From assembly GCF_044704955.1 (NCBI RefSeq), contig NC_091979.1, positions 319,114,001 to 319,178,000 of the forward strand: a stretch of DNA of 64,000 nucleotides. The letters run 5' to 3'. A program made the position numbers and the translations under genes. This stretch comes from Pristiophorus japonicus. Lineage: Eukaryota. Below the pieces are notes generated by a model. The model saw nothing but the letters and a program-made list of their open reading frames with translations, searched no databases and was not told where the DNA came from. Within the stretch, counting starts at the first letter, position 1, and each line of letters begins with the position of its first letter. Below are positions 675 through 60,960 of the stretch, in pieces.

Positions 675-3178
675 AATAACCTTTTTACAGTCCTGCCCCC
701 GAAGCCAATTGGTTGGAAATAGCCAAGTTTAAGGCTATCTCTGGTCCCTTTAATAATCAGGATCAACGGTAAAACCAATCTGGTGGATACATTATATTTA
801 ATCAGAGTTTAAGACAGAATATAACATATTAGTTATAGAGCAAAAACATACAACCGTAACAGGTAGTTGATACCGATTCCGATCGGACAAAAGGCTGATA
901 CAAGTGAGCAGTACTCTGGCTTGCTTGCAGTCTCTTTCTCTCGTCTAGATCTTCCTTCGGTAAAGCATGGGATCTCTCTCGAAAAGTGTTCAATCAGCTA
1001 AATTTCTGTTTCGCCCTTCCCTCACACCATCTATACCATCATTCTTCAGGAAGCTACTTTTATTCTATTTTTAGGAGTGGGCCTGACCCTGGATATTGAC
1101 AAGACCGTTTGACCTTTCGAGGTGCCCCTAAAAACTTACTATCCAATAAGCTTTCTAGTTCTTTGTCTCAATTCTTGTTTCAACAACCCGCCTTAAAGAT
1201 GTCTTACAATTTTGGTCACATTTCACTATTTATATCTTATCGAAGTAGCTTTTCTGTGGAATTCCTTTGATACCTCTCTGTCTCTATTCTCCCAGGAACA
1301 ATCACTACACAGCCTTATCCCTCTACTCTTTGAACTATGAAGCTGATGTGGAGTATTACAAAGATGCTCAACACAAGTCTGTTTAGGAGAAAAGATTTGT
1401 TTATTAAGTACTCGATCGAGAGAAAGACAGCTTCTGCACGAGTTCAGTAACTCGGTGATCCAAACTAGCTGTTCTCCTCGAACAAGCGTCAGGTTACTAT
1501 TTTTATAGTAACAGTCAAAATACATACAAAATTATGAAGTTCCGTGTGGAAGCTTTCCATTTGTTGTTTCCCTGCCGCATCACAAAGTTTCGCCTAACTT
1601 TATGATTGCAAATATTAATTAGTTAATACAATTATATTGACAGCAAGCTTCGTTACCTCCCCTGTGCACCTTTTATCTGATAAGTTACGTGCTACATCAT
1701 TCTCAGGTCTGCGCCTCTTGGCTGATCTGCTCTCAACCAGTTGAGATTTTTCTCAATCCGCCTTTGTTTCCCGTAATCGTTTATCACCTCATGTGACCTA
1801 ACCTTGGTCCAACTGTCTGGGTTATACTGTGATAAGGTGATTTATCTTCCTGAGAGTTGGAGTTTTAACATTTTCCCTGTGTTTCGGAGCACGTATTTCT
1901 TTTGTTTCTGACAGCCTTTATTTTTGGTTGTTAACGTTACTTAATTAGGTCCCCTTTGATTAATTAGGTTCCCTCTACTTCATTTTTTTTCTACAGAAGC
2001 AAAACCAAAAAACTGCTCACCCCAGAGTGTTACGTCTTTTACGACATAGCAACATGTTTACCGTAATTCTACAAACTTCCTTTCATTATCTACACCAGCA
2101 GTTTTGTTCAGGTAACTTTAAACCCTACCCGTTGCATTATACATAAAATACATCAACAAGTATTTAAATTGCCTAGCATCAGGGAGATTGTAAATAGTAC
2201 AAAAAACTATATCCTCCATTTCTAAGCATTTCTCTGATTCGAATCGATATTCCATCTGCAGTTCAAAACAACGATTTAAACATAATATTCTTATCCGTTT
2301 TACACATTCGTGACAGTTTTATACATTTTTAGGAATCCCTGATTTCGAAAAAGTGCTGACAATCAGATGTCCCTCACAACCAACAGTAATACAATAACTC
2401 ATTGATAGTCTTTATGTTACAAGCAGTAATAGGTGTAATGTCTCTCTATCCTATGTGTAACTAGCAGTAATACTTTAACCCACTGATACTCACCCTGAAA
2501 CCATACCCAGAATCCCCCTGCACTGCACCAGGTGAGGTCAGGCTCCCCAGTTGAAGCCACATTTAAGAGGCCCGATCTCTCTCTCTATCACCTTGGAATC
2601 TGATTTGGTCTCCGGTTCCGTGTGAAGGTGACAATTCTGAACTGGGAACCTCAGTCTGAGCTGATCTGTATTTGGACTTCACACGTCAAACCCGGCCGGC
2701 ACAGACCCACCTGAACCAATCCAAGAGATTGCACAAAGGCCAGTGAGCTCAGTGTGTGGGGCACTTCTCACAGGGCACATTGTCCTAAACTCAGCTCAGC
2801 ACCAACATTTCTAAACCGTTCCATGTGTTCGGTCTCAATAAAGGAGGGTTTTCATAGAATTATAGAAATGACTGCACAGGAGGAGACCATTCGACCTCGG
2901 AGCTTGCACTCTCTTCTGTAATCCCATTCCCCCCAGATCTTATAACATTCTTCCTTTTCAAATATTTATCACATTCCCTTTAGGTTTTAGAATCCTTGGT
3001 TTCTGTTCCCTAGTTCCCCATTCGCCCACCACTGGAAATAATCTTTCACTATTTACCCACAGTAAGGTCCCCAGGTTTCACTCACCCCTTTACTGGCTGC
3101 TCCTCTCTCAGTGTCACTCCCACTCACCACGTTACTGCTGCTCCCGGCTCTATGGGAAATACTGGACCCTGCACCCAC

Positions 3179-4083
3179 CCCATTCCCCAGTCTCCCTCTC
3201 CCCGAACCCCCATTCCCCAGTCTCCCTCTCCCCGAGCCCCCATTCCCCAGTCTCTCTCTCCCCGAGCCCCCATTCCCCAGTCTCTCTCTCCCAGAGCCCC
3301 CATTCCCCAGTCTCCCTCTCTCCCCAAGCCCCCATTCCCCAGTCTCTCTCCCCCCGAGGCCCCATTCCCCAGTCTCTCTCTCCCCGAGGCCCCATTCCCC
3401 AGTCTCCCTCTCCCAGAGCCCCCATTCCCCAGTCTCCCTCTCTCCCCGAGCCCCCATTCCCCAGTCTCTCTCTCCACGAGGCCCCATTCCCAAGTCTCCC
3501 TCTCCCCAAGCCCTCATTCCCCAGTCTCCCACTCGCCGAGCCCCCATTCCCCAGTCTCTCTCTCCCCGAGGCCCCATTCCCAAGTCTCCCTCTCCCCAAG
3601 CCCTCATTCCCCAGTCTCTCTCTCCCCGAGCCCCCATTCCCAAGTCTCCCAGTCCCCAAGCCCCCATTCCCCAGTCTCCCGCTCCCTGAGCCCCCATTCC
3701 CCAGTCACCCTCTCCCTGAACCCCCATTCCCCAGTCTCCCACTCTCCACAAGCCCCCATTCCCCAGTCTCCCTCGCCCGGAGCCCCCATTCCCAGTCTCC
3801 CTCTTCCCAAGCCCCCATTCCCCAGTCTCTCCCTCTCTCCCCGAGCCCCCATTCCCCAGTCTCCCTCTCCCCCACCCCCCATTCCCCAGTCTCCCTCTCC
3901 ACGAGCCCCCATTCCCCAGTCTCCCTCTCCCTGAGCCACCATTCCCCAGTCTCTCTCTCCCCAAGCCCCCATTCCCCAGTCTCCCTCACCCAGAGCCCCC
4001 ATTCCCAGTCTCCCTCTCCCCAAGACCCCATTCCCAGTCTCCCTCTCTCCCCCAGCCCCCATTCCCAGTCTCCCTCTCCCCCG
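3179..4083. repeat. ~30-32 bp C-rich minisatellite (CCCCATTCCCCAGTCTCCCTCTCCCCGAGC)n, array 1
   Basis: Direct tandem repetition; generates the spurious GRLGNGG/PIPQSPSP ORFs. Confidence 0.97.
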
Positions 4084-4404
4084 GCCACCATACATAGAAT
4101 CATAGAATGGTTACAGCACGGAAGACGACCATTTGGCCATCCAGCCCGTGCCGAATTAGACACATCTCATTTACATTAAACACCAAAAGACCCAACTGGA
4201 GATTTCTATCCAATCACCAAAAAGAAAATATCCCCAAACCCACTCAATGATAGATACATTACCGATTACTATTAACACTGGCAGCAGCCAGTGACAATCA
4301 AACGAAATGAAGATGCAGAATCGTGGATTGCTTCTGAATGAACCCTCCTTGCGACACAGCAAGTCCAGATTCTAGTCCCAGTGAACTTCACTTCGGGACC
4401 AGCC

Positions 4405-5472
4405 TCAGGCTTGGGCTGGTGAGTTTGGGGATAATTCTCCTCGTTCAGCAGGGTTCGCTGGGCTGTAACCAGATGTCTCCTCTCCTCCTCTCCTCTTCCA
4501 CACAACCGCACCGATCACAAGAGCAATCAGGGCGACGGCAGCAATCACAATTCCAACAATCAAACCCCTATTTGTTCCCTCTGGCGATCCTGGAGTCACT
4601 CGGAACGTCCCGTCCCAGTCTCGGGTCTTCCCTCCTGCTTGGCCGCTCTGCTCATACTGACAGGAATAGGTGGCTCCATCCGCGGGCTCGATCTGAGCCC
4701 ATGTCGTGAGCTGGTAGGTGCCATCGTGGTTGGGCAGGATGCCCGTGGATTCCGTGTCCCTGATTGGCTCGCCATTTCTCAGGAGGGTCACTTGGATTTC
4801 GCGAGGGTAAAAACCTGTGAGGAGACAGGAGAGTTGGGGGGCTTTAATATTCGACGCCTTGTCCACAGAAGGAAACACTTGAGGAGCAACAGCTCCCAGT
4901 TCTCTCTCTCCAGCCTTCAGGTATTTCTTCAGCCACTCGATGCACTCCTGCTCCAGGTAACTTTTGTCCTGCTGCATTTCGGCCCTGTCCTGGTCCCACT
5001 TGTTCTTGGTGATCTCTCCCCACGGTACCGGGGTGACCCACACCAGGCGATCCTTGTCGAAGCTGATCAGGTCCTTCCCGTCCCAGCCGTACTGCCAGAA
5101 GCCGCTGGTGGTGCCGTCATCCCGCAGCTCACAGCCGCACAACCTCTGCAGCGTGTGGATCCCGCCGGTCTGGTTGGTGCGGGTTAAGACGGTCTGAATG
5201 TTGCCTTTCATCACCTGCTCCTTGCCCCGCAGGATCTGTGTGTAGCGCTCCCAGTACTCGGCGCCCTCGCTCTCCCTGATCCACCGCTGCCGCGGGGTGT
5301 ACTGCCGGCTCACACTGTCATAGTAAATAAACTGCTGGTCATCCACATAACCCACATCGGTGAACTCAGCAATGCCCGGGAGCGGAGTGATAGCCGTGTG
5401 CATGTACCGTAGGGAGTGAGAGCCTGCACACACCTCTCCACACAGAAGGGCCAGCACGGTCAGTCCAAACAT
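4405..5472 (-). CDS. MHC class I heavy chain, single-exon (leader-a1-a2-a3-TM-cytoplasmic in one 355-aa ORF); shark class I, probably UBA-like nonclassical lineage by its a3 domain
   Basis: Signal peptide MFGLTVLALLCGEVCA; a1 GSHSLRY...EYWER...RTNQT (N86 glycan site); a2 CGCEL...TKNKW...YLEQECIEWLKKYL; Ig-C1 a3 LSCLLTGFYP...PNHDGTYQL...YSCQ; TM LIVGIVIAAVALIALVIGAVVW; tail KRR...GYSPA; acaATG Kozak; no stops or frameshifts. Confidence 0.97.
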   Translation of the reverse strand: MFGLTVLALLCGEVCAGSHSLRYMHTAITPLPGIAEFTDVGYVDDQQFIYYDSVSRQYTPRQRWIRESEGAEYWERYTQILRGKEQVMKGNIQTVLTRTNQTGGIHTLQRLCGCELRDDGTTSGFWQYGWDGKDLISFDKDRLVWVTPVPWGEITKNKWDQDRAEMQQDKSYLEQECIEWLKKYLKAGERELGAVAPQVFPSVDKASNIKAPQLSCLLTGFYPREIQVTLLRNGEPIRDTESTGILPNHDGTYQLTTWAQIEPADGATYSCQYEQSGQAGGKTRDWDGTFRVTPGSPEGTNRGLIVGIVIAAVALIALVIGAVVWKRRGGEETSGYSPANPAERGELSPNSPAQA

Positions 5473-5567
5473 TGTTACTTCCCTCGACAGGCTGGAATGA
5501 GCGGTTTGCAGGCAATCCTTTTCCGAGAGACCGTCCGTGAGCTGCGCCCAATTCAGACCGTGTGATT

Positions 5568-6527
5568 CCTGTGCCCTGTGCCGATACTGTGTCTCTGGGA
5601 CTGTCTCTCTGTGCCCAGTGCTGATACTGTGTCCCTGGGACTGTCTCTCTGTGCCCAGTGCTGATACTGTGTCTCTGGGACTGTCTCTCTGTGCCCAGTG
5701 CTGATACTGTGTCTCTGGGACTGTCTCTCTGTGCCCAGTGCTGATACTGTGTCCCTGGGACTGTCTTTCTGTGCCCTGTGCTGATACTGTGTCTCTGGGG
5801 CTGTCTCTCTGTGCCCTGTGCTGATACTGTGTCCCTGGGACTGTCTCTCTGTGCCCTGTGCTGATACTGTGTCTCTGGGACTGTCTCTCTGTGCCCTGTG
5901 CTGATACTGTGTCCCTGGGACTGTCTCTCTGTGCCCTGTGCTGATACTGTGTCTCTGGGACTGTCTCTCTGTGCCCAGTGCTGATACTGTGTCCCTGGGA
6001 CTGTCTCTCTGTGCCCTGTGCTGATACTGTGTCTCTGGGACTGTCTCTCTGTGCCCTGTGCTGATACTGTGTCTCTGGGACTGTCTCTCTGTGCCCTGTG
6101 CCGATACTGTGTCTCTGGGACTGTCTCTCTGTGCCCAGTGCTGATACTGTGTCTCTGGGACTGTCTCTGTGCCCTGTGCTGATACTGTGTCTCTGGGACT
6201 GTCTCTCTGTGCCCTGTGCTGATACTGTGTCTCTGGGACTGTCTCTCTGTGCCCTGTGCCGATACTGTGTCTCTGGGACTGTCTCTCTGTGCCCAGTGCT
6301 GATACTGTGTCTCTGGGACTGTCTCTGTGCCCTGTGCTGATACTGTGTCTCTGGGACTGTCTCTGTGCCCTGTGCTGATACTGTGTCTCTGGGACTGTCT
6401 CTCTGTGCCCTGTGCTGATACTGTGTCTCTGGGACTGTCTCTCGGTGCCCTGTGCTGATACTGTGTCTCTGGGACTGTCTCGGTGCCCTGTGCTGATACT
6501 GTGTCTCTGGGACTGTCTCTCTGTGCT
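5568..6527. repeat. 40-bp minisatellite (CTGTCTCTCTGTGCCCTGTGCTGATACTGTGTCTCTGGGA)n, ~24 copies, between MHC-I promoter and start codon
   Basis: Direct tandem repetition with a few 38-bp variants. Confidence 0.97.
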
Positions 6528-6579
6528 ATCTGTTCTTGCGCTTTGCCCAGTGCAGAGTGTTTTACACTCAGACTCCTCC

Positions 6580-6780
6580 GGACTGATTGGTTCGAGGGTA
6601 TATTTGTCTCCAATTACAATAAAAACAGGCTGTGAGCCAATAGGCTCCGGGTAGAAAAGACACGGGGAGAGTTTGTGTTGGTGCCGAAATAAACTTTCCA
6701 AACATTGAACTATCCAATCAGACAAATACTGCGAGCTGCATCATCAGTTGCCGGGTAGGTTAAAGATAATCCCCGCCTCT
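6580..6780 (-). promoter_or_regulatory. MHC-type X-Y (SXY) promoter module for the class I gene
   Basis: Minus strand: X1 CCCGGCAACTGATG (6755-6742), X2-like TGATGCA, exactly 20 bp spacer, Y box CTGATTGG (6721-6714). Also a GC box (6771-6777), IRF-like AAGTTTATTTCGG (~6684-6696) and further CCAAT boxes at ~6637 and ~6583. No S box at canonical spacing. Confidence 0.75.
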
Positions 6781-6873
6781 CCCGGTCCCGAGTTCTCCCA
6801 CCACCCTCCAAACCCAACTTCCCGACTCCCAACCCCCCGAAAGCTCTGCCCACCCCCGGCAGCTCGATCTCCT

Positions 6874-7008
6874 GAGGGGTTCAAGGGATCTGCTGCGAGG
6901 GGACTGAAGGGATCTGCTGGGAGGGGGCTGAAGGGATCGGCTGGGAGGGGGCTGAAGGGATCTGCAGGGAGGGGACTGAAAGAATCTGCTGGGAGGGGGC
7001 TGAAGGGA
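6874..7008. repeat. 27-bp tandem repeat (GGGGGCTGAAGGGATCTGCTGGGAGGG-like), ~5 copies
   Basis: Visible tandem units; GLKGSAGRG repeats in translation. Confidence 0.9.
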
Positions 7009-7166
7009 GTTGCTGTGGTGTGTGAGAGAAGGCCAGGGCTGGAGAGGCCCAGTGACCTTGTCTGGAGCCCAGGGATCAGTCCAGCTCTTCCAGGCCCCCA
7101 CAGAATAAATTACACTCAACCTGGCCTCTTCTACCTCCCGCCTGGCCTCACCATGATCCCCCCTGA

Positions 7167-7591
7167 CCCATTCCCCAGTCTCTCTCTCCCGAGCCCCCAT
7201 TCCCCCTCTCCCCGAGCCCCCATTCCCCAGTCTCCATCTCCCCGAGGCCCCATTCCCCAGTCTTCCTCTCCCCGAGCCCCCATTCCCCAATCTCTTTCTC
7301 CCTGAGCCCCCATTCCCCAGTCTCCCTCTCCCCGAGCTCCCATTCCCCAGTCTCCCTCTCCCTGAGCCCCCATTCCCCAGTTTCCCTCTCCCCAAGCCTC
7401 CATTCCCCAGTCTCCCTCTCCCCGAGCCCCCATTCCCCAGTTTCCCTCTCCCCAAGCCCCCATTCCCCAGTCTCCCTCTCCCCGAGCCCCCATTCCCCAG
7501 TCTCCCTCTCCCCGAGCCCCCATTCCCCAGTCTCCCTCTCCCCGAGCCCCCATTCCCCAGTCTCCCATTCCCCGAGCCCTCTTTCCCCAGT
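7167..7591. repeat. 30-bp C-rich minisatellite, array 2 (same unit and orientation as 3179-4083)
   Basis: CCCCATTCCCCAGTCTCCCTCTCCCCGAGC tandem, ~14 copies. Confidence 0.97.
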
Positions 7592-7955
7592 GTTAAGGGA
7601 TGATCTAATTGAGATGTTTGATATGATTAAAGGATTTGACCGGGTCGATCGAGAGAAACGATTTCCTCTGGTGGGGGAGGCCAGAACAAGGGGGCATGAA
7701 ATAGAAATTTGAGCTCAGCCATTCAGGGGTGATGTCAGACAGCACCTCTTCACACAAAGGGTAGTGGAAATCTGGAACTCTCTCCCCCAATAAGCTGTCG
7801 AGGTTAGGCCAATTAAAAATGTCAAAACTGAGATGATAGAATTTTGTTAGACAAGGGTATTAAGGGTTACAGAACCAGGGTGGGTAGATGGAGTTGTGAT
7901 ACAGTTCAGCCATGATAAATTAAATGGTGGAACATGTTCCTATGTTCCTACCTAT
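7592..7955 (+). mobile_element. CR1 LINE 3' fragment (old)
   Basis: Encodes degenerate LRDDLIEMFDMIKGFDRVD...FTQRVVEIWNSLP C-terminus; ends in TGTTCCTA repeats. Confidence 0.8.
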
Positions 7956-9259
7956 GATCATACTAATGGATGATCGTGGATTTCTGCTGGCACTCATGAG
8001 CCAATTGTTCATTTGTTGTTGCCTCCGGGACCATTACGGGATTCCAATGGGTTTCCCCCGAACTGAGGGATGCCAGGCAGTGAGGCTGCAGGGAGGTGTT
8101 CCGGGCCCATGTGCACTGACCTGCTCATCTGTTCTGCTATTCTGACTTTACCAGCATTGCTATGTTGATTATATATGAGCTAAAAATGTAAGTTAGATAC
8201 ACATAAGATGGGCTTTGATTATTTTGTTCTCTTACAGCAACACACTGAATGATTGCTTGAAAGCAAAACTCGGCCAGCTTCAATGTCACTTCACGTGGGG
8301 CCCACAGAGAGACAGCATTGACTTGGACGACATGAAGTATAGATTACAAGATTTAATACAGGCTCGTGTGAAATATCAGGCCAGGTCTGACAACCACCTC
8401 GCATTTGTAAACTGTCAGCAAGGCAATTCAAAGGGGCAATTCAAAACTTAAAGGAAGCTGAAAAGATTCTGAGGGAGAACCATGAACATGAATTTGAAAG
8501 AAGAAGCATCATCACCTATGGAAACTATGCCTGGGTATATTATCACATGGGCCAACTGACAGAGGCCCAGTCCTACCTCGACAAGCTGGAGATGATCTGT
8601 AAATAATTTACTGATGGCTCTCAGTATACAGCACTGATACCTGAAGTATACGGGGAGAAGGGTTGGTCACTGTTGAATTCTCCTTGTCAATACTATGAAG
8701 AGGCAAAGGAATGTTTTTGAGAAGACTCTGGAGGAAGATCCTGATGACACTGAATGGAACGTTGGCTATGCGACTGTTTTGTTCCGTCTGGAAGGGTTTT
8801 CTGGTACCCCAGAGAGTGGTGACCGCAGCCAATCAGTGAAGCAGTTGTGACGTGTGCTGGAACTTGATCCAGATGACTCTGTAGCCATGTTGGCTCTAAA
8901 ACTACAAGAGTTCAATCAAAAGGTGGAAGAACACGAATTAGTTGAACAAGCATTGCAGAAGTCCCCTGATCTTCCATATGTAACTCGTTCTGCAGCAAAA
9001 TTTTACAGAAGAGAAGGAGATGTGGAAAAAGCTGTGGAGCTGTTGAAGAAAGCATTAAAAATTACTCCAAACTCTACCTTCATACACCACCAAATAGGTC
9101 AGTGTTGCAGAAAAAAAATATTTCAACTGATCAAATATCCAGGCAGCAAAGCCCCTCGCAATCCTGCTTTTCAACAGAAAGCTGAGTTGATCAATCAATG
9201 CAAGTACTATTTTGAAAAGGCATTTGAGCAGAAGCCATCATTTATTTTTGCACAATTGC

Positions 9260-11869
9260 AAATCTACAACGCAGAAGGAGGCCATTTCGGCCCATCGTGT
9301 CCACACCGGCCGACAAAGAAACATACGGCCCTCAGTCAGCAGCCCTGAAAGTTACATATAAACGTATGAACAATGAACAATGGCAGAAAGGTAAAGAGCA
9401 CCCAGCCCAACCAGTCTGCCCCACACAACTGCGACACCCCTTGCACCGAAACATTCTACACTCCTCCCCAACCGGAGCCATGTGATCTCCTCGGAAAGGC
9501 AAAAAACAGATAAAAACCCAGGTCAATTGGGGAAAAAATATCTCGGAACATTCCTCTCCAACCCATCCAGGTAATCGAAACTCGTCCAGGAGATCACCCT
9601 GGATATATTCGATTCGCTGCAGTACTTACCATCATAGCTGTGCCTGCCAACAACAGGTTATCCAGTCTAATCCCACTTACCAGCTTTAGGTCCATGTAAC
9701 CCTGCAGATTATGGCACTTTAAGTGTCCATCCAAGCACCTTTTAAATGTGTTGAGGGTTTCTACATCCACCACCCTTCCAGGCCCTAAGTTCCAGACCCC
9801 CACAACCCTCTGCTTGAAAAAGCCACCCCTCAAATCCCCTCTGAACCTTCCACCAACCACCTTAAAACTATGCCCCCTCATAATTGAACCCACCACCAAG
9901 GGAAATAGGTCCTTGCTATCCACTATATCCAGACCCCTCAAAATTTTGGACACCTCAATGAGGTCTCCTCTCAACATCCTCTGTTCCAATGAGAACAAAC
10001 CCAGCCTATCCAATGATGTGGTATATTTGGACTTTCAGAAGGCTTTCGACAAGGTCCCACACAAGAGATTAATGTGCAAAGTTAAAGCACATGGGATTGG
10101 GGGTAGTGTGCTGACGTGGATTGAGAACTGGTTGTCAGACAGGAAGCAAAGAGTAGGAGTAAATGGGTACTTTTCAGAATGGCAGGCAGTGACTAGTGGG
10201 GTACCACAAGGTTCTGTGCTGGGGCCCCAGCTGTTTACATTGTACATTAATGATTTAGATGAGGGGATTAAATGTAGTATCTCCAAATTTGCGGATGACA
10301 CTAAGTTGGGTGGCAGTGTGAGCTGCGAGGAGGATGCTATGAGGCTGCAGAGTGACTTGGATAGGTTAGGTGAGTGGGCAAATGAATGGCAGATGAAGTA
10401 TAATGTGGATAAATGTGAGGTTATCCACTTTGGTGGTAAAAACAGAGAGACAGACTATTATCTGAATGGTGACAGATTAGTAAAAGGGAAGGTGCAACGA
10501 GACCTGGGTGTCATGGTACATCAGTCATTGAAGGTTGGCATGCAGGTACAGCAGGCGGTTAAGAAAGCAAATGGCATGTTGGCCTTCATAGCGAGGGGAT
10601 TTGTGTACAGGGGCTGGGAGGTGTTGCTACAGTTGTACAGGGCCTTGGTGAGGCCACACCTGGAGTATTGTGTACAGTTTTGGTCTCCTAACTTGAGGAA
10701 GGACATTCTTGCTATTGAGAGAGTGCAGCGAAGATTCACCAGACTGATTCCCGGGATGGTGGGACTGACCTATCAAGAAAGACTGGATCAACTGGGCTTG
10801 TATTCACTGGAGTTCAGAAGAATGAGAGGGGACCTCATAGAAACGTTTAAAATTCTGACGGGTTTAGACAGGTTAGATGCAGGAAGAATGTTCCCAATGT
10901 TGGGGAAGTCACAGTCTAAGGATAAGGGGTAAGCCATTTAGGACCGAGATGAGGAGAAACTTCTTCACCCAGAGAGTGGTGAACCTGTGGAATTCTCTAC
11001 CACAGAAAGTAGTTGAGGCCAAATCACTAAATATATTCAAAAGGGAGTTAGATGAAGTCCTTACTACTCGGGGGATCAAGGGGTATGGCGAGAAAGCAGG
11101 AAGGGGGTACTGAAGTTTCATGTTCAGCCATGAACTGATTGAATGATGGTGCAGGCGAGAGGGGCTGAATGGCCTGATCCTGCATCTATTTTCTATGTTT
11201 CTATGTTTCTATCCTCATAGCTAAGTTTCTCCATTCCAGGCAGCATCCTAGCAAATGTCCTCTGCACCCTCTCTATTGCAATCACGTCCTTTCTATAATA
11301 TGGCGACCAGAACTGCACGCAGTACTCCAGCTGTGGCCTAACCAAAGTATTATACATTTTAAGCATAACCTCCCTGCTCTTGTATTATGTGCCTCAGCCA
11401 AGAAAGGCAACCATTCCGTATGCCTTCTTCACCACCTTATCCACCTGGCCTGCTACTTTCAGGGATCTGTGGACAAGCACTCCAAGATCCCTTTATTCAT
11501 CTACACTTTTACCGGTTAATGTGTATACCCTTTCCTTATTAGCCCTCTCAAAGTGCATTACCTCATACTTATCCAAATTAAATTCCATTTGCCACTGCTC
11601 TGCCCACCTGACCATTAGATTGATATCCTCCTGCAGTCCATGACTTTCTGCTTCATTAACGACCACACAGCCAATTTTGGTGTCACCTGCAAACTTCTTA
11701 ATCATACTCCCGATAATCAAATCTAGATCATTGATGTATACCACAAAAAGCAAGGAACCCAGTACTGAGCCCTGCGGACCCCACTGGAAACATCCTTCCA
11801 GTCACAAAAACATCCATTTACCATTACCCTTTGCTTCTTACCGCTGAACCAATTTTGGATCCAACTAGC
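9260..11869 (-). mobile_element. CR1 LINE (copy A), 5'-truncated, split by nested copy B
   Basis: ORFs 9594-10013, 11493-11753 and 11723-11932 encode the RT C-terminus (DRLGLFSLEQRMLRGDLIEV; YINDLD...KFAGDTK); sequence resumes after copy B at ~11212. Confidence 0.9.
10015..11211 (+). mobile_element. CR1 LINE (copy B), young subfamily, nested in copy A
   Basis: DVVYLDFQKAFDKVPH...GVPQGSVLGP...KFADDTKL; (TTCTATGT)n tail. Confidence 0.95.
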
Positions 11870-26080: not shown

Positions 26081-27410
26081 CGGGCCTAAGTTTCCACACA
26101 CGCCTAGAACGGCGCAGTCCCGACCTGGACGCCCGTTTTTCGCGCCACAAAGTGCGCCTAAAAAAATCCTCGGTATTCTCCACCTCCCTGCAGGTCCTCT
26201 GGCCCTCGCGCAGCGCAGCACGAGCTGTGGTGGGCGGAGCCATGTCCCTGCGCTGAAAACAGTGCCGGGACCTCTGCACATGCGCGCTATAGTGGGCACG
26301 CAAGTGCAGTAGCTCCAGGCGCCCGAAGCACGCAGCCCCTAGCCCTGGCCGAATGGCCTCACTGGAGCTGCGTGAATAAGGCTCCTCCCCCGGCCAGCTC
26401 CTGCTTCCCCCACCCCCCGACCGGACCCGACCCGATCCGACCCGCGCTCCTGCTCCCCCCCACCCCCGAATGGACCCGACCCGACCCGACTCCCGCCCCC
26501 CAACCTGACCCCCCCGACCCTCCGACTGGACCCCCCCCGACTCGATTCCCACCCCCCCCCCAACCCGACCGGACTCCCGCTTCCGCTCCCGCTCCGCCCC
26601 CCGCCGACTGGACCTGACCCGCGCTCCTGCTCCCGCTCCCCGCCCCCCCACCCCGACTCGACCCGACCCGATCTGACACGACTCGACTCCCGCTCCCCCC
26701 CCCGCCCCCAGACTGGATCCGACCTGACCTCCCCCTCCCCGACCTGACCTCTNNNNNNNNNNNNNNNNNNNNNNNNNNNNNNNNNNNNNNNNNNNNNNNN
26801 NNNNNNNNNNNNNNNNNNNNNNNNNNNNNNNNNNNNNNNNNNNNNNNNNNNNNNNNNNNNNNNNNNNNNNNNNNNNNNNNNNNNNNNNNNNNNNNNNNNN
26901 NNNNNNNNNNNNNNNNNNNNNNNNNNNNNNNNNNNNNNNNNNNNNNNNNNNNNNNNNNNNNNNNNNTCTCTCTCACCCTCCCCCCTCTCTCTCCCCCCCT
27001 CCCCACTCTCTCTCTCTCCCTGCCCCCCTCTCTCTCCCTCCCTCCCTACCCCCCCCCTCTCTCTCCCTCCCTCCCCCCCCCCGCTCTCTCTCCCTCCCTC
27101 CCTCCCCCCGACCCGAACCGAACCGAACCTCCCCGACCCAACGCCACCTACCTGTAAATCTGGTGCTGGGGACGGGCCCTGCCTGAAGTCTCGGGCCGGC
27201 CCGTTCAGCCTTCGGTCCCGAAAGGCCTGCCTGAAGCACTTTCACACAGGTTGGGAGATGGTTTATTTAATCTTTTCTTTGCTTATAAATGTTTATTCAG
27301 GTTGGATTTATTTGTATAATATTTGTATAAGTATAAATAAGGATTTATTATAGAATTTAATGACTTCCCTTCCCTGTCCCTCCCCCCCCCACCTCGTTCT
27401 GGACGCCTAA
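26081..27410. mobile_element. GC-rich non-autonomous DNA element (Harbinger-like TIR) with internal (CCCGA)n/CT low-complexity tract
   Basis: Starts GGGCCTAAGTTTCC; GC-rich, low-complexity core. Confidence 0.45.
26753..26966. other. Assembly gap (214 N)
   Basis: Run of N. Confidence 1.
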
Positions 27411-44809: not shown

Positions 44810-47296
44810 TTAGAAACATAGAAACATAGAAAATAGGTGCAGGAGCAGGCCATTCAGCCCTTCTAGCCTGCACCGCCATTCAGCGAGTTCATGGCTGAAC
44901 ATGAAACTTCAGTACCACCTTCCTGCTTTCACGCCATACCCCTTGATCCCCCGAGTAGTAAGGACTTCATCTAACTCCCTTTTGAATATATTTAGTGAAT
45001 TGGCCTCAGCTACTTTCTGTGGTAGAGAATTCCACAGGTTCACCACTCTCTGGGTGAAGATGTTTCTCCTCATCTCGGTCCTAAATGGCTTACCCCTTCT
45101 CCTTAGACTGTGACCCCTGGTTCTGGACTTCCCCAACATTGGGAACATTCTTCCTGCATCCAACCTGTCCAAACCCGTCAGAATTTTAAACGTTTCTATG
45201 AGGTCCCCTCTCACTCTTCTGAACTCCAGTGAATACAAGCCCAGTTGATCCAGTCTTTCTTGATAGGTCAGTCCCACCATCCCGGGAATCAGTCTGGTGA
45301 ATCTTCACTGCACTCCCTCAATAGCAAGAATGTCCTTCCTCAAGTTAGGAGACCAAAACTGTACACAATACTCCAGGTGTGGCCTCACCAAGGCCCTGTA
45401 CAACTGTAGCAACACCTCCCTGTACTCAAATCCCCTCGCTATGAAGGCCAACATGCCATTTGCTTTCTTAACCGCCTGCTGTACCTGCATGCCAACCTTC
45501 AATGACTGATGTACCATGACACTCAGGTCTCGTTGCACCTTCCCTTTTCCTAATCTGTCACCATTCAGATAATAGTCTGTCTCTCTGTTTTTACCACCAA
45601 AGTGGATAACCTCACATTTATCCACATTATACTTCATCTGCCACGCATTTGCCCACTCACCTAACCTATCCAAGTCACTCTGCAGCCTCATAGCATCCTC
45701 CTCGAAGCTCACACTGCCACCCAACTTAGTGTAATCCGCAAATTTGGAGATACTACATTTAATCCCCTCGTCTAAATCATTAATGTACAATGTAAACAGC
45801 TGGGGCCCCAGCACAGAACCCTGCGGTACCCCACTAGTCACTGCCTGCCATTCCGAAAAGTCCCCATTTACTCCTACTCTTTGCTTCCTGTCTGACAACC
45901 AGTTCTCAATCCACGTCAGCACACTTCCCCCAATCCCATGTGCTTTAACTTTGCACATTAATCTCCTGTGTGGGACCTTGTCGAAAGCCTTCTGAAAGTC
46001 CAAATATACCACATCAACTGGTACTCCTTTGTCTACTTTACTGGAAACATCCTCAAAAAATTCCAGAAGATTTGTCAAGCATGATCTCCCTTTCACAAAT
46101 CCATGCTGACTTGGACCTATCATGTCACCATTTTCCAAATGCACTGCTATGACATCCTTAATAATTGATTCCATCATTTTACCCACTACTGAGGTCAGGC
46201 TGACCGGTCTATAATTCCCTGCTTTCTCTCTCCCTCCTTTTTTAAAAAATGGGGTTACATTGGCTACCCTCCACTCGATAGGAACTGATCCAGAGTCAAT
46301 GGAATGTTGGAAAATGACTGTCAATGCATCCGCTATTTCCAAGGCCACCTCCTTAAGTACTCTGGGATGCAGTCCATCAGGCCCTGGGGATTTATCGGCC
46401 TTCAATCCCATCAATTTCCCCAACACAATTTCCCGACTAATAAAGATTTCCCTCAGTTCCTCCTCCTTACTAGACCCTCTGACCCCTTTTATATCCGGAA
46501 GGTTGTTTGTGTCCTCCTTAGTGAATACTGAACCAAAGTACTTGTTCAATTGGTCTGCCATTTCTTTGTTCCCCGTTATGACTTCCCCTGATTCTCACTG
46601 CAGGGTACCTACGTTTGTCTTTACTAACCTTTTTCTCTTTACATACCTATAGAAACTTTTGCAATCCGCCTTCATGTTCCCTGCAAGCTTCTTCTCGTAC
46701 TCCATTTTCCCTGCCCTAATCAAACCCTTTGTCCTCCTCTGCTGAGTTCTAAATTTCTCCCAGTCCCCGGGTTCGCTGCTATTTCTGGCCAATTTGTATG
46801 CCATTTCCTTGGCTTTAATACTATCCCTGATTTCCCTAGATAGCCACGGTTGAGCCACCTTCCCTTTTTTATTTTTACGCCAGACAGGAATGTACAATTG
46901 TTGTAATTTATCCATGCGGTCTCTAAATGTCTGCCATTGCCCATCCACAGTCAACCCCTTAAGTATCATTAGCCAATCTATCTTAGCCAATTCCTGCCTC
47001 ATACCTTCAAAGTTACCCTTCTTTAAGTTCTGGACCATGGTCTCTGAATTAATTGTTTCATTCTCCATCCTAATGCAGAATTCCACCATATTATGGTCAC
47101 TCTTCCCCAAGGGGCCTCGCACAATGAGATTGCTAATTAATCCTCTCTCATTACACAACACCCAGTCTAAGATGGCCTCCCCCCTAGTTGGTTCCTCGAC
47201 ATATTGGTCTAGAAAACCATCCCTTATGCACTCCAGGAAATCCTCCTCCACCGTATTGCTTCCAGTTTGGCTAACCCAATCTATGTGCATATTAAA
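44810..47296 (-). mobile_element. CR1 LINE, young, 5'-truncated ORF2
   Basis: 418-aa and 231-aa ORFs with end of APE and RT motifs; (TAGAAACA)n tail. Confidence 0.96.
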
Positions 47297-56215: not shown

Positions 56216-59200
56216 GCTTTTCATTCTCTTTTCTATTTCAGTAAGTAACCTTTAGCATTGTTGCTGCCAAATTAAGTTCATCTAGGGGTTAAGTCATGAC
56301 AGGAGAGCTCGGACACATGTTATGCTCTTTCTGTACCATGTGGGAAATCAGGGACGCCTCCGGTGTCCCTGACAACTCCGTGTGCGGGAAGTGTATCCGC
56401 CTCCAGCTCCTGACGAACCGTGTTGCGGAACTGGAGCTGCGGGTGGATTCACTTTGGAGCATGCACAATGCTAAGAAAGATGTGAATAGCACATTTCATG
56501 AGTTGGTCTTACCGCAGGTTAAGGGTTCACAGCCAGATAGGGAATGGAAGACCAACAGGAAGAGCAGTGCAAGGAAGATAGTGCAGGGGTCCCCTGCGGT
56601 CATCCACCTGCAAAACAGATACACCGCTTTGGGTTAGGTTGAGGGGGATGACTAATCAGGGGAGATCAGCAGCAGCCATGTTCATGGCAGCGTGGCTAGC
56701 TCTGCTGCACAGGAGGGCAGGAAAAAGAGTGGGAGAGCAATAGTGATAGGGGATTCGATTGTAAGGTGAATAAATAGGCATTTCTGCGGCCGCAACCAAG
56801 ACTCCAGGATGGTATGTTGCCTCCCTGGTGCAAGGATCAAGGATGTCTCGGAGCGGGTGCAGGACATTCTAAAAAGGGAGGGTGAACAGTCAGTTGTTGT
56901 GGTGCATATAGGTACCAATGATATAGGTAAAAAATGGGATGAGGTCCTACGAGACAAATTTAGGGAGCTAGGAGTTAAATTAAAAAGTAGGACCTCAAAA
57001 GTAGTAATCTCAGGATTGCTACCAGTGCCACGTGCCAGTCAGAGTAGGTATCGCAGGATAGCTCAAATGAATACATGGCTTGAGCAGTGGTGCAGAAAGG
57101 AGGGATTCAAATTCCTGGGACATTGGAACTGGTTCTGGGGGCGGTGGGACCAAGTACAAACCGGACGGTCTGCACCTGGACAGGACCGGAACCAATGTCC
57201 TAGGGGGAGTGTTTGCTAGTGCTGTTTGGGAGGAGTTAAAACTAATATGGCAGGGGGATGGGAATCTATGCAGGGAGACAGAGGGAAATAAAATGGAGAC
57301 AGAAGCAAAAGATAGAAAGGAGAATAGTAAAAGTGGAGGGCAGAGAAACCCAAGGCAAAAAACGAAAAGGGCCACTTTATAGCAGAATTCGGAAGGGTCA
57401 AAGTATGTTCAAAAGACAAGCCTGAAAGCTCTGTGCCTCAATGCGAGGAGTATTCGGAATAAGGTGGACAAATTAACTGCGCAGATAGCAGTTAACTGGT
57501 ATGATGTGATTGGCATCACGGAGACATGGGTGACCAAGGCTGAGAACTCAACATGCAGGGGTATTCAGCATTTAGGATATATAGACAGAAAGGAAAAGGA
57601 GGCGCGGTGGCATTGCTGGTTAAAGAGGAAATTAATGCAATTGTAAGGAAGGACATTAGCTTGGATCATGTGGAATTGGTATGGGTGAAGCTATGGAATA
57701 GCAAAGGGCAGAAAACGCGAGTGGGAGTTGTGTACAGGCCACCAAATAGTAGTACTGAAGTTGGGGACAGCATCAAACAAGAAACAAGGGATGTGTGCAA
57801 TAAAGGTACAGCAGTAATCATGGGCGACTTTAATCTATATATTGATTGGGCTAACCTAACTGGTAGCAATGCGGTGGAGGAGGATTTCCTGGAGTGTATT
57901 AGGGATGGTTTTCTAGACCAATATGTTGAGGAACCAACCAGAGAGCTGGCCATCCAAGACTGGGTGATGTGTAATGAGAAGGGACTAATCAGCAATCTTG
58001 TTGTGCGAGGCCCCTTGGGGAAGAGTGACCATAATATGGTAGAATTCTTTATTAAGATGGTGAGTGACAAAGTTAATTCAGAAACTAGGGTCCTGAACTT
58101 AAGGAAAGGTAACTTTGATGGTATGAGGCGCGAATTGCCTAGATTAGTCTGGCAAATGATGCTTAAAGGGTTGACGGTGGATAGGCAATTGCAAACCTTT
58201 AAAGATCACATGGATGAACTTCAACATTTGTAAATCCCTCTCTGGAGTAAAAATAAAACGGTGAAGGTGGCTCAACCGTGGCTAACAAGGGAAATTAAGG
58301 ATAGTGTTAAATCCAAGGAAGAGGCATACAAATTAGCCAGAAAAAGTAGCAAGCCGGAGGACTGGGAGAAATTTAGAATACAGCAGAGGTGGACAAAGGG
58401 TTTAATTAAGAGGGGGAAAATGGAGTACGAGAGTAAGCTTGCCGGATACATAAAAAATGACTGCAAAAGCTTCTATAGATATGTGAAGAGAAAAAGATTA
58501 GTGAAGACAAACGTTGGTCCCTTGCAATCGGATTCGGGTGAATTTATAATGGGGAACAGAGAAATGGCAGACCAATTGAACAAGTACTTTGGTTCTGTCT
58601 TCACAAAGGAAGACACAAATAACCTTCCCGATGTACTAGGGAACCGAAGGTCTTGTGAGAAGGAGGAACTGAAGGATATCCTTATTAGGCGGGAAATTGT
58701 GTTCGAGAAATTGACGGGATTGAAGGCCGATAAATCCCCAGGACCTGATAGTCTACATCCCAGAGTACTTAAGGAAGTGGCCCTTGAAATAGTGGATGCT
58801 TTGGTGATAATTTTCCAACAGTCTATGGACTCTGGATCGGTTCCTATGGACTGGAGGGTTGCTAATGTAACACCACTTTTTAAAAAAGGAGGGAGAGAGA
58901 AAACGGGTAATTATAGACGGGTTAGCCTGACATCAGTCGTGGGGAAAGTGTTGGAATCAATCATTAAGGATGAAATAGCAGCACATTTGGAAAGCAGTGA
59001 TAGGATTGGTCCAAGTCAGCATGGATTTATGAAGGGGAAATCATGCTTGACGAATCTTCTGGAATTTTTTGAGGATGTAACCAGTAGAGTGGACAAGGGA
59101 GAACCAGTGGATGTGGTGTATTTGGACTTTCAAAAGGCTTTTGACAAGGTCCCACACAAGAGATTGGTGTGCAAAATTAAAGCACATGATATTGGGAGTA

Positions 59201-60127
59201 ATGTACTGACGTGGATAGAGAACTGGTTGGCAGACAGGAAGCAGAGAGTCGGGATTAACGGGTCCTTTTCAGAATGGCAGGCAGTGACTAGTGGAGTGCC
59301 GCAGGGCTCAGTGCTGGGACCCCAACTCTTTACAATATACATTAATGATTTGGATGATGGAATTGAGTGTAATATCTCCAAGTTCGCAGATGACACGAAA
59401 CTGGGTGGCGGTGTGAGCTGTGAGGAGGATGCTAAGAGGCTGCAGGGTGACTTGGACAGGTTAGGTGAGTGGGCAAATACATGGAAGATGCGGTATAATG
59501 TGGATAAATGTGAGGTTATCCACTTTGGGGGCAAAATCACGAAGGCAGAATATTATCTGAATGGCGGCAGATTAGGAAAAGGGGAGGTGCAGCGAGACCT
59601 GGGTGTCATGTACATTAATCATTGAAGATTGGCATGCAGGTACAGCAGGCGGTGAAGGCAGAAAATGGTATGTTGGCCTTCATAGCAAGGGGATTTGAAT
59701 ATAGGAGCAGGTAAGTCTTATTGCAGTTGTACAGGGCCTTGGTGAGGCCCCAACTGGAATATTGTGTTCAGTTTTGGTCTGCTAATCTGAGGAAGGACAT
59801 TCTTGCTATTGAGGGAATGCAGCGGAGGTTCACCAGACTGATTCCCGGGATGGCAGGACTGTCATATGAGAAGAGAGTGGATCGACTGGGCCTGTATTCA
59901 CTGGAGTTTAGAAGGATGAGAGGGGATCTCATAGAAACATATAAAATTCTGACGGGACTGGACAGGTTAGATGCAGGAAGAATGTTCCCAATGTTGGGGA
60001 AGTCCAGAACCAGGGGTCACAGTCTAAGGATAAGGGGTAAGCCATTTAGGACCGAGATGAGGAGAAACTTCTTCACCCAGAGAGTGGTGAACCTGTGTAA
60101 TTCTCTACCACAGAAAGTAGTTGAGGC
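56216..60127 (+). mobile_element. Near full-length CR1 LINE (ORF1 Zn-finger + SGNH esterase; ORF2 APE + RT)
   Basis: ORF1 CSFCTMWE...CGKC, VIGDSIV, VVVHIGTNDIG, DGLHL; ORF2 LNARSIRNK, GITETW, YLDFQKAFDKVPH, FADDTK; scattered stops. Confidence 0.95.
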
Positions 60128-60960
60128 CATGTTGGCCTTCATAGCGAGGGGATTTGAATACAGGGGCAGGGAGGTGTTGCTACAGTTGTACAGGGCCTTG
60201 GTGAGGCCACACCTGGAGTATTGTGTACAGTTTTGGTCTCCTAACTTGAGGAAGGACATTCTTGCTATTGAGGGAGTGCAGCGAAGGTTCACCAGACTGA
60301 TTCCCGGGATGGCGGGACTGACCTATCAAGAAAGATTGGATCAACTGGGCTTGTATTCACTGGAGTTCAGAAGAATGAGAGGGGATCTCATAGAAACGTT
60401 TAAAATTCTGACGGGTTTAGACAGGTTAGATGCAGAAAGAATGTTCCCAATGTTGGGGAAGTCCAGAACCAGGGGTCACAATCTGAGGATAAGGGGTAAG
60501 CCATTTAGGACCGAGATGAGGAGAAACTTCTTCACCCAGAGAGTGGTGAACCTGTGGAATTCTCTACCACAGAAAGTAGTTGAGGCCAATTCACTAAATA
60601 TATTCAAAAGGGAGTTAGATGAAGTCCTTACTACTCGGGGGATCAAGGGGTATGGCGAGAAAGCAGGAAGGGGGTACTGAAGTTTCATGTTCAGCCATGA
60701 ACTCATTGAATGGCGGTGCAGGCTAGAAGGGCCGAATGGCCTACACCTGCACCTATTTTCTATGTTTCTATGTTTCTATTCACTAAATATATTCAAAAGG
60801 GAGTTAGATGAAGTCCTTACTACTCGGGGAATCAAGGGGTATGGCGAGAAAGCAGGAAGGGGGTACTGAAGTTTCATGTTCAGCCATGAACTCATTGAAT
60901 GGCGGTGCAGGCTAGAAGGGCTGAATTGCCTACTCCTGCACCTATTTTCTGTGTTTCTAT
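60128..60960 (+). mobile_element. Two further tandem CR1 3' ends (60128-60778 and 60779-60960)
   Basis: Repeated C-terminal ORF2 segment and two (TTCTATGT)n tails. Confidence 0.92.

Follow-up and report, generated by a model that had tools for sequence, protein, structure and literature searches.

The locus analysed here raises the question of how an MHC class I gene came to stand without introns in the genome of the Japanese sawshark, Pristiophorus japonicus, and whether such a gene may still serve a function. It lies at positions 4405-5472, on the minus strand, of a 64,000-nt stretch of DNA (hereafter the window), where an initial annotation, made from the sequence alone, had described an intact intronless class I gene of 355 codons extending from leader to tail. 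This description is upheld by the ORF list, by Pfam, by the match to a solved structure and by gap-free alignment to relatives. The ORF begins with ATG, encodes 355 aa without interruption and comprises, on the minus strand, a leader (5472-5425), the a1 (5424-5164), a2 (5163-4894) and a3 (4893-4612) domains, and a connecting peptide, transmembrane segment (TM) and cytoplasmic tail (4611-4408, with the TM at 4566-4498), followed by the stop codon (4407-4405). Pfam MHC_I covers residues 17-192 (E 8.4e-53, 179 bits) and C1-set residues 199-275 (E 1.1e-14, 54.9 bits), the scores being the same as those of expressed relatives, and the hydrophobic stretch spans residues 303-325; the MHC_I fold, C1-set Ig domain, TM and short tail that make up an MHC class I heavy chain are all present. 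The closest solved structure is that of a nurse shark class I molecule (6lup, E 5e-94), with a1-a2-a3 aligned unbroken, a match that settles the fold. No second class I piece was found in the 64-kb window.

In classical class I molecules, the peptide termini are bound by eight residues, Y7, Y59, Y/R84, T143, K146, W147, Y159 and Y171, and all eight are kept in the sawshark ORF under a motif-based HLA-A2 numbering, the anchors having been taken straight from the translation rather than from a structural alignment to HLA. In precursor numbering they correspond to Y23 (Y7), Y73 (Y59), R98 (R84), T155/K158/W159 (T143/K146/W147), Y172 (Y159) and Y184 (Y171), accompanied by W180 (W167). The cysteine pairs C114-C177 and C216-C271 are likewise present, matching the conserved disulphides C101-C164 and C203-C259, and the N86 glycan site is found as N100-Q-T. 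Position 123 is occupied by L135, and the GYSPA tyrosine motif is located at residues 335-339 (4470-4456, minus strand); all these features except the cysteine pairs had been listed in the initial annotation and recur in the translation. The near-invariant tail motif GESSSNSSA is altered and reads GELSPNSPA. Judged from these residues, the protein still looks able to bind peptides.

The ORF aligns without gaps to the 355-aa class I proteins P0005, from the same species, and P0007, from Heptranchias, and this colinearity implies that its coding sequence contains no intron. For the relatives, the presence of introns was deduced from isoform ends (intron retention and alternative ends at domain borders): splice variants end precisely where a2 meets a3, a3 meets the TM and the TM meets the tail (P0013; P0012 versus P0039; P0008 versus P0007 and P0010), and the window ORF runs colinearly across these three borders. 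In addition, DNA contigs at the depth of the gene family described below span the leader/a1, a1/a2 and a2/a3 junctions. All parental introns are thus absent from the CDS, as in a retrocopy, while an intron in the 5'UTR is possible according to the model of another family copy, P0124, in which the AG at 5493-5492 serves as splice acceptor; a contig covering 5351-5542 is unspliced across the 5'UTR. No intron-bearing parent gene was found, nor do the DNA contigs branch at exon junctions toward a near-identical intron-bearing parent. A literature search returned no report of intronless shark class I genes.

Retrocopies carry a 3' tail that is recognised by the reverse transcriptase, which is poly(A) for L1 and a hairpin plus octamer for CR1. 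The class I gene is contained in a candidate retroposed unit of 3,052 bp (4092..7143, minus strand) that closes with a tail of the latter type. No poly(A) tail was found at the 3' end of the unit, and neither AATAAA nor ATTAAA occurs on the gene strand of the 3'UTR (4154..4404, minus strand). Instead, the gene strand ends in the microsatellite (ATTCTATG)2 (4093..4108), a CR1-type 3' terminus, directly preceded on its 5' side by a hairpin with a stem of 9 + 8 bp (4114..4153; -27.3 kcal/mol, z -3.35) that aligns to LINE tails. The same octamer repeat closes four CR1-like LINE copies in the window (at 11191, 44816, 53682 and 60758), and DNA depth rises about 2000-fold at 4090-4139, to about 390,000 in the DNA run. 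The hairpin and octamers together constitute the recognition module described for the CR1 reverse transcriptase, in agreement with the CR1 3' structure of a hairpin followed by an ATTCTRTG 8-bp microsatellite (PMC8665684).

Copies of the direct repeat ATGGTG(A)GGCC frame the unit, and the unit splits a single 30-bp, G/C-strand-biased minisatellite, which continues in the same orientation in the downstream (3178..4081) and upstream (7195..7591) flanks. The upstream copy of this candidate target-site duplication, ATGGTGAGGCC (7144..7154, minus strand), sits where the minisatellite stops and is one of only two matches to the repeat pattern in 64 kb; the downstream copy, ATGGTGGCC (4083..4091, minus strand), lies one base past the octamer tail. 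The repeat measures 9-11 bp and is imperfect (9/11), and it stands at both ends of the split minisatellite, as a target-site duplication would. The initial annotation had seen no poly(A) remnant and no target-site duplication; the former observation stands, whereas the latter has to be revised in view of the flanking repeat and the CR1-type tail. These marks support an RNA-derived origin of the gene. A reading of the window copy as cargo of a DNA transposon was dropped, as no terminal inverted repeats bound the unit.

Between its ends, the unit holds an upstream region with an X-Y box module, a 40-bp minisatellite, the 5'UTR, the intronless CDS, the 3'UTR and the CR1-type tail, so that about 1.7 kb of upstream DNA including the X-Y module form part of the 3.05-kb insert. 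The module (6714..6755, minus strand) pairs an X1/X2-like box, CCCGGCAACTGATGATGCA, with a Y box, CTGATTGG, across a 15-nt spacer, and was matched once, with 0 matches expected in shuffles. It is followed at 6640-6565 (minus strand) by additional CCAAT/ATTGG boxes and by a TATA-like stretch. The 40-bp minisatellite (5569..6526; 24 copies, 95% matches) separates the module from a native-type 5'UTR (5473..5568, minus strand). Its segment 5523-5473 is conserved in the 5' extensions that class I models of Carcharodon, Scyliorhinus and Heterodontus carry. In an ordinary retrocopy the parental promoter is not copied; here, the unit encloses both the X-Y module and the CCAAT boxes, and this promoter-like region, recognised by its motifs, is a departure from that rule.

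The surroundings do not resemble the MHC. Head-to-head with the class I unit lies a pseudogene of IFIT exon 2 (8237..9350, plus strand; IFIT5/IFIT1 match, E 1e-28), which carries at least two frameshifts and at least three stops and has been truncated by a CR1-like LINE (9350-11206). Apart from this pseudogene, LINE ORFs and repeats make up the content of the 64-kb window, and no TAP, PSMB or class II genes were found in it; the linkage to TAP, PSMB8 and class II by which classical genes are recognised is therefore not seen within these 64 kb. The initial annotation had placed the gene outside the MHC proper and proposed synteny as a check, and the context within the window agrees with that placement. 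A survey of elasmobranch genomes recorded no class I gene outside the MHC (PMC10751288).

The initial annotation described one retrogene. The ORF is 99% identical to the sawshark protein P0001, whose 90%-identity cluster comprises six distinct sawshark proteins. The family thus numbers at least six near-identical annotated proteins; its copies differ by 1-4 residues and by under about 1%, and the class I ORF is one member of a young multicopy processed family, not a lone gene. All six annotated proteins are intact, and among them only two a1/a2 positions vary, these being paralogues from one individual's assembly and not a population sample. DNA contigs show almost no variant sites in the family, whose depth in the DNA run is about 200 versus 11-25 for variant contigs, a depth that points to several copies but is no copy number. 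Flanks were read for the window copy alone, the other members being known here as annotated proteins. In the model of P0001, the first two residues may stem from a spliced exon.

The lineage of the retrogene was traced domain by domain, as the initial annotation had suggested. In the a3 tree, it is sister to sawshark P0005 inside the starred clade with Squalus, while a3 domains of the Heterodontus O19480 type, which we take to be UBA, form a separate clade; the assignment of UAA and UBA lineage names to individual database entries is in part our own assumption, and the name 'Sqac-UAA' gave no match in a literature search. The earlier impression that a3 resembles UBA thus gives way to a grouping with the sawshark and Squalus genes of 355/351 aa. 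The a2 tree agrees with this placement and the TM/tail also groups with sawshark and Squalus genes, so that all domains but a1 place the retrogene with UAA-type genes of these sharks. The a1/a2 segment has a long branch, with 69% identity at best, and in its tree the family's partner is a bamboo shark protein; since an a1/a2 clade with sawshark P0005 is not rejected by the AU test (p 0.27), we make no claim of an ancient separate lineage from this tree.

Among the family-wide conserved positions (at least 90% conserved), 2/70 are changed in the class I ORF, which indicates that its lineage diverged under constraint. In the comparison with P0005, differences fall on 3/70 conserved positions and on 69/204 others (Fisher p 2e-7). 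Old and constrained as the lineage is, its copies are young. Neutral change of up to 1% will probably leave an ORF intact even without selection, and because the copies are too young, a clean ORF is no proof of selection. The initial annotation had read the clean frame as a sign of function, an argument that loses its force at this age. Likewise, of its 'old, functional retrogene', the derivation from RNA and a constrained lineage stand, whereas 'old' finds no support in copies that differ by under about 1%.

Exact contigs of the CDS, 3'UTR and 5'UTR occur in small RNA-like runs in which class I sequence is enriched about 1000-fold over DNA; 'RNA-like' is a judgement from this enrichment, the run type not being on record as RNA, and the contigs carry no strand. 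Within the same RNA-like run, the exact contigs reach a depth of 36-50 versus 1e4-1e5 for P0005-like contigs, contig depth being a poor measure. One RNA-like contig (4096-4655) spans the 3'UTR and extends through the CR1 tail, and a 303-bp contig with 1 mismatch to the gene was found in a separate study. The signal could represent IFIT pre-mRNA or read-through.

We consider it somewhat more probable than its alternatives taken together (about 0.55) that a single CR1-tail retroposition was followed by co-duplication with an IFIT block, giving rise to a probably functional class Ib family outside the MHC. According to this reading, a class I gene of UAA type, from the lineage of the sawshark itself, would have been transcribed from a start upstream of its own promoter, and the transcript would have been spliced normally and have ended in a CR1-type hairpin and (ATTCTATG)n tail in place of poly(A). 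The CR1 reverse transcriptase may then have copied this RNA into the 30-bp minisatellite beside or inside an IFIT gene, creating the 9-11 bp target-site duplication. A template of this kind, spliced, initiated upstream and CR1-tailed, would explain why the new copy has no coding introns and nonetheless carries some 1.7 kb of upstream DNA with the X-Y module. The IFIT/class I block would subsequently have been duplicated as DNA along the IFIT cluster to yield at least six near-identical copies. Low-level production of the protein is probable, as is a role as a non-classical (class Ib) molecule, encoded outside the MHC, that associates with b2m and binds peptides; the family may be interferon-responsive. 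As far as can be judged from sequence, a function of the retrogene is plausible but unproven. Several observations speak against this explanation: a promoter inside a retroposed unit is unusual and demands an upstream-initiated template RNA, an unrelated insertion, truncated at its 5' end, could account for the 61-nt CR1/SINE tail, the flanking repeat is imperfect and the GESSSNSSA motif altered, a parent gene did not turn up, a clean ORF would be expected even without selection, and P0005-like contigs exceed the RNA-like depth of the gene by about three orders of magnitude.

The most serious competing view, which we regard as rather unlikely yet worth keeping in mind, is that the family consists of young processed pseudogenes, with too little time for decay since the retrocopy and its block duplicates arose. 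Selection on an intron-bearing parent before retroposition would then account for the conserved residues, and the RNA signal would be read-through or IFIT pre-mRNA. The few differences among copies, the near absence of variant sites in DNA contigs, the likely survival of an ORF at up to 1% neutral change, the dead neighbouring IFIT gene, the altered tail motif and the very low depth of strandless contigs compared with P0005-like ones are all in line with such a view. It accounts less readily for six of six annotated proteins being intact, for a unit equipped with an X-Y module and conserved 5'UTR, and for exact contigs at depth 36-50 in a small RNA-like run with the sequence also present in a second study; furthermore, the near-identical parent that might be expected to branch at exon junctions does not appear in the DNA contigs. 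That the introns were lost in place when the gene recombined with its cDNA, keeping the native promoter and later spreading as DNA only, appears improbable. It would fit the native-looking promoter and 5'UTR, and would treat the CR1 tail as an unrelated truncated insertion, such 5'-truncated CR1/SINE tails being extremely abundant (see the depth at 4090-4139), and the flanking repeat as chance. This is difficult to reconcile with one repeat copy lying a single base past the octamers and the other exactly where the same minisatellite resumes, with the lack of a repeat of its own around the CR1 tail, and with the tail starting at the hairpin base and thus representing the minimal recognition module.

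The intact hairpin and octamers, the RNA-like contig reaching through the tail to 4096 and the near-identity of the family would also be compatible with a unit that is still mobile, its promoter-bearing, CR1-tailed transcript being recopied by CR1 enzymes with a preference for this minisatellite and without any block duplication; we rate this course of events as lower still than in-place intron loss. That a host immune gene has turned into a self-contained mobile element, with its own promoter and CR1 tail, transcripts that run through this tail and can be recopied by CR1 enzymes, and SINE-like spread, is similarly doubtful as a description of the unit. An assembly artefact or cDNA contamination has nothing in its favour beyond the oddity of an intronless class I gene and can practically be dismissed: four DNA runs contain 90-92% of its words, DNA contigs run at even depth from the CDS into both UTRs, the ORF sits among genomic repeats with a flanking duplication, and six paralogues are annotated.

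Compared with known systems, the retrogene is closest to shark UAA-type class I (Squalus acanthias Q8HWH7, sawshark P0005 and nurse shark UAA, PDB 6lup), with which it shares domain order, length (355 versus 355/351 aa), peptide-terminus anchors, R84, N86 glycan site, both disulphides and the tyrosine motif. It departs from them in having no coding introns, in being multicopy and almost invariant, in its IFIT setting as opposed to TAP/PSMB neighbours, in its long a1/a2 branch and altered serine-rich tail motif, and in RNA-like contigs far shallower than P0005-like ones. The shark UBA lineage is likewise multicopy and UAA-derived (PMC12562908), but maps within the MHC, between c4 and rxrb (PMC10751288); the retrogene, in both a3 and a1/a2, stands apart from the UBA-type (O19480 type) clades, and it reads EYW where UBA-type sequences read EAW/ESW.

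Domain introns have also been lost in the 'processed' class I genes of the teleost L lineage, expressed and non-classical, where the explanation given is that (partly) spliced mRNA was retroposed (Dijkstra et al. 2007, cited in PMC4364491). These belong to another lineage and another vertebrate class, and the sawshark retrogene keeps classical anchors, whereas a hydrophobic groove is suspected for L according to a passage in PMC4364491; salmonid L genes moreover retain one intron (two exons), while the sawshark CDS is a single exon with a CR1 tail and its own upstream region. With CR1-tailed non-autonomous retroposons, the unit shares the 3' end of hairpin and 8-bp ATTCTRTG microsatellite, a module that is believed to guide CR1 enzymes to their template and underlies tail sharing between SINEs and LINEs, in the account that PMC8665684 gives of Suh 2015 and in a passage of PMC3747384. 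Its body, unlike theirs, is a spliced protein-coding mRNA plus promoter and no tRNA- or 5S-derived SINE. CR1-made retrogenes are scarce, according to the title of Suh 2015 (cited in PMC8665684).

Since CR1 LINEs depend on a 3' tail of their own, they are thought to yield very few retrogenes, and a whole gene apparently moved with its promoter by way of such a tail provides a concrete example of a CR1 retrogene origin. An intact, classical-looking class I family in an IFIT cluster would also be an exception to the rule drawn from the surveyed elasmobranch genomes (PMC10751288). Should the copies be only a young pseudogene family, they would still serve to date recent CR1 activity and the expansion of the IFIT cluster. 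A protein product, if there is one, would place a peptide-type, non-polymorphic class I molecule among interferon-induced genes, in parallel with the processed salmonid L genes, for which passages in PMC6797598 and PMC11695323 describe responses to microbial danger signals, viral challenge and interferon, and innate-like T cells or NK receptors of the oldest jawed vertebrates might recognise it as a ligand.

The intronless class I gene is one ATG-started frame of 355 codons on the minus strand (4405-5472) in the ORF list, with an MHC class I a1/a2 domain at residues 17-192 (Pfam, E 8.4e-53, 179 bits) and a C1-set domain at residues 199-275 (54.9 bits). Its top solved-structure match, the nurse shark class I heavy chain 6lup (E 5e-94), aligns unbroken from a1 to a3. 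The intact one-frame gene of the initial annotation is thereby borne out, as are the groove anchors listed there: the translation holds Y23, Y73, R98, N100-Q-T, T155, K158, W159, Y172, W180 and Y184, with L at position 123 (L135) and GYSPA in the cytoplasmic tail. A second place matching the protein was not found in the 64-kb window by tblastn. The nearest database protein, P0001, annotated from Pristiophorus japonicus, is 99% identical, and its 90%-identity cluster comprises six distinct sawshark proteins of 355-385 aa, each one to four residues away from the window product; cluster member P0125 is the window gene's own product. The window gene is one member of a young multicopy family, whose copies differ by well under 1%. 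A serine-rich tail motif that is near-invariant across sharks and rays, GESSSNSSA, reads GELSPNSPA throughout this family (window 4437-4411), which suggests, as far as sequence can tell, changed or relaxed tail signalling.

Outside the near-identical family, identity to the window gene is 74% for sawshark P0005, 72% for Squalus acanthias Q8HWH7 and 68% for Heptranchias P0007. Identity to P0005 is 65% in a1, 73% in a2, 83% in a3 and 74% in TM plus tail. The a3 tree places the family as sister to P0005, both within an 18-sequence clade sharing the VAPQVF...YSCQYEQ-type a3 and including Squalus, Heptranchias, Heterodontus, Scyliorhinus and Stegostoma proteins; a3 domains of the Heterodontus O19480 type, which we take to be UBA, of Triakis and of nurse shark UAA fall into other clades. 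With these presumed UAA and UBA names of individual database entries, the proposed likeness of a3 to UBA is not supported. The a2 domain and the tail likewise group with the sawshark and Squalus genes. When a1 and a2 are taken together, the tree pairs the family, on a long stem (0.36), with bamboo shark P0045 (Chiloscyllium plagiosum); this pairing arises from a1 alone (window 5424-5164; SH-aLRT 93) and comes with two unusual motifs present in both, TDVGYVDDQQF.YYDS and QYTPRQRWI. Convergence or an old lineage of a1 may account for it. Grouping the family with P0005 instead was not rejected by an AU test (p 0.27), and a search scored solely on a1/a2 returned nothing above 69% outside the family. 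We would trace the window gene to the UAA-type lineage of the sawshark itself, its a1 being either fast-evolving or old.

The ORF is colinear and gap-free with the 355-aa P0005 and P0007. Among relatives sharing its a3 type, splice-variant ends fall exactly on domain borders: Heterodontus P0012 ends four residues into read-through past a3, where the full-length form P0039 goes on into the TM segment; Heptranchias P0008 and Heterodontus P0010 diverge from full-length forms immediately past the TM segment; and in Scyliorhinus P0013 the beginning of a3 is missing. Judged from these protein isoform ends rather than from genomic structure, the lineage has the usual introns, and lacking them is a derived state of the window gene. 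In the DNA run, contigs span the leader/a1, a1/a2 and a2/a3 junctions at full family depth and no branch was seen at any of the three, so a near-identical intron-bearing copy is not apparent in that individual; this is moderate evidence for its absence, rare branches being dropped by assemblers. One DNA contig (depth 25) has 24 other letters replacing 58 bp of a3 (window 4702-4761); it stems either from a paralogue that has diverged or from a piece of class I sequence at another genomic site.

The 251-nt 3'UTR contains neither AATAAA nor ATTAAA. It is followed by a 40-nt hairpin (4153-4114; -27.3 kcal/mol, z -3.35), matched in folding by 1 of 200 shuffles, and then by two exact ATTCTATG octamers (4108-4093, gene strand). 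Four CR1-like LINE copies in the window end with the same octamer repeat, and their tails align with the sequence ahead of the octamers; homology to this high-copy tail family ends at the hairpin base, and DNA-run depth rises about 2000-fold over exactly the 50 tail bases. The CR1 3' structure, as described, consists of a hairpin plus an ATTCTRTG microsatellite and is thought to be recognised by the CR1 reverse transcriptase (PMC8665684); tail sharing is treated in PMC3747384. Several CR1-like LINE copies or fragments ending in (T/A)TTCTATG repeats lie at 7600-7957 (+), 9350-11206 (+), 44816-46561 (-) and 57553-60773 (+), with partly open reverse-transcriptase and endonuclease ORFs; LINEs of this type probably supplied the enzymes for class I retroposition. 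One base past the octamers stands ATGGTGGCC (4091-4083), and ATGGTGAGGCC (7154-7144) lies at the opposite, upstream end, being one of two matches to the flanking-repeat pattern in the whole window against 0.73 expected. A 30-bp minisatellite in the same orientation occupies both outer sides (3178-4081 and 7195-7591), and inverted terminal repeats bounding the stretch were not found. With flanks read for the window copy alone, 4092-7143 looks like an insert of 3,052 bp within the minisatellite, putatively CR1-tail primed and with a target-site duplication; the earlier remark that neither a poly(A) remnant nor a target-site duplication was seen has to be revised, in that a tail exists but is of CR1 type.

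The unit so bounded is more than an mRNA. The parental promoter is expected to be missing from an ordinary retrocopy. From its 5' end (7143) to the ATG, the unit contains a 24-bp repeat, an X1/X2-like box with a 15-nt spacer and Y box (6755-6714; one match, none expected), several CCAAT boxes plus a TATA-like stretch, a 958-bp minisatellite of 40-bp units, and a 5'UTR whose final 50 nt are conserved with Carcharodon, Scyliorhinus and Heterodontus class I models. Just upstream of the conserved 5'UTR, the Heterodontus P0012 model contains a peptide repeated in tandem, (GITQSELDTAHRPRTRGR)n, and at the matching spot the window has GTGITRSELGAAH (5535-5567), beside the 40-bp minisatellite; this region seems to be repeat-prone in two shark orders. 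The N-terminal extension of cluster member P0124 leaves the window sequence exactly at an AG (5492-5493), 19 nt before the ATG; that copy may accordingly use a splice acceptor within its 5'UTR, linked to an exon further upstream of unrelated sequence.

The unit's head-to-head neighbour is IFIT exon 2 on the plus strand (8237-9350, start approximate), matching IFIT1 and IFIT5 structures (E 1e-28 and 1e-4). It is a pseudogene with at least two frameshifts and at least three stops, and a CR1-like LINE truncates it. As IFIT exon 1 was not located, intron 1 of IFIT may enclose the class I unit. Elsewhere in the window there are repeats, ORFs for LINE reverse transcriptase and endonuclease, and an N run at 26753-26966. 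As anticipated for a locus outside the MHC proper, TAP and PSMB sequences, and class II as well, were not found in the 64 kb.

Eight sequencing runs contain the stretch, none recorded as RNA. Two small same-organism runs yielded exact contigs (4096-4655, 4642-4956 and 4948-5233, depth 36-50), one contig at 5351-5542 that is unspliced over the AG at 5493, and contigs 90-95% like the window gene at depth 1e4-1e5, whose loose ends translate to P0005-type peptides (FNQGVKG, KEPNL). Corresponding bins of the DNA run reach just 1-3 times family depth; given this roughly 1000-fold class I enrichment, the two small runs are almost certainly RNA. Family transcripts would accordingly be present at a low level, in contigs that carry neither strand nor a reliable level, and the signal may instead be antisense IFIT pre-mRNA. 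Run X7, from a separate study (organism label B), contains 303 bp from the a1/a2/a3 region, with a single mismatch, and 149 bp from the tail region, where two mismatches occur; this points either to a very close relative carrying the family or to a labelling matter.

We favour, at a probability of about 0.55, a single CR1-tail retroposition followed by block duplication, the outcome being a non-polymorphic class Ib family of peptide type, located outside the MHC and probably functional. In the simplest single-step account, the template RNA would have started upstream of the class I gene's own promoter, been normally spliced and ended at the CR1 tail in or just past the 3'UTR; this transcript would have been retroposed once, via that tail, into the IFIT locus, and the IFIT/class I block duplicated thereafter. 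That the family consists of young processed pseudogenes is the strongest competitor, at about one chance in four. Among 70 ectodomain positions at least 90% conserved in 53 other class I proteins, the ORF alters two (F24M and P35A), mid-range for expressed class I genes; it differs from P0005 at 3 of the 70 and at 69 of 204 other positions (Fisher p 2e-7), and its Pfam scores (179 and 54.9 bits) are on par with relatives. This indicates that purifying selection acted along the family's long branch, and leaves the intron loss undated, since the divergence may have accumulated in an intron-bearing ancestor. Substitutions simulated on the real ORF, with indels reducing the chances further, left it free of stop codons with probability 0.77, 0.61, 0.06 and 0.01 at neutral change of 0.5%, 1%, 6% and 10% per site; as the copies differ by well under 1%, clean frames by themselves prove nothing.

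Intron loss in place through cDNA recombination, with later movement at the DNA level, would make the CR1 tail unrelated to the event; given the tail, octamers and flanking repeats at the unit's borders, we consider this improbable. A CR1-tailed unit that is still mobile, for which near-identity of the copies might be cited, appears slightly less probable again, and an artefact is hardly conceivable with six distinct database proteins in the cluster.

Processed class I genes are also found in the teleost L lineage, where they are attributed to retroposition of partly spliced mRNA (PMC4364491). [quoted passage not shown] Compared with known systems, what would be new in the sawshark family are its classical-type groove, a CR1 tail, a promoter carried along and co-amplification with IFIT genes.
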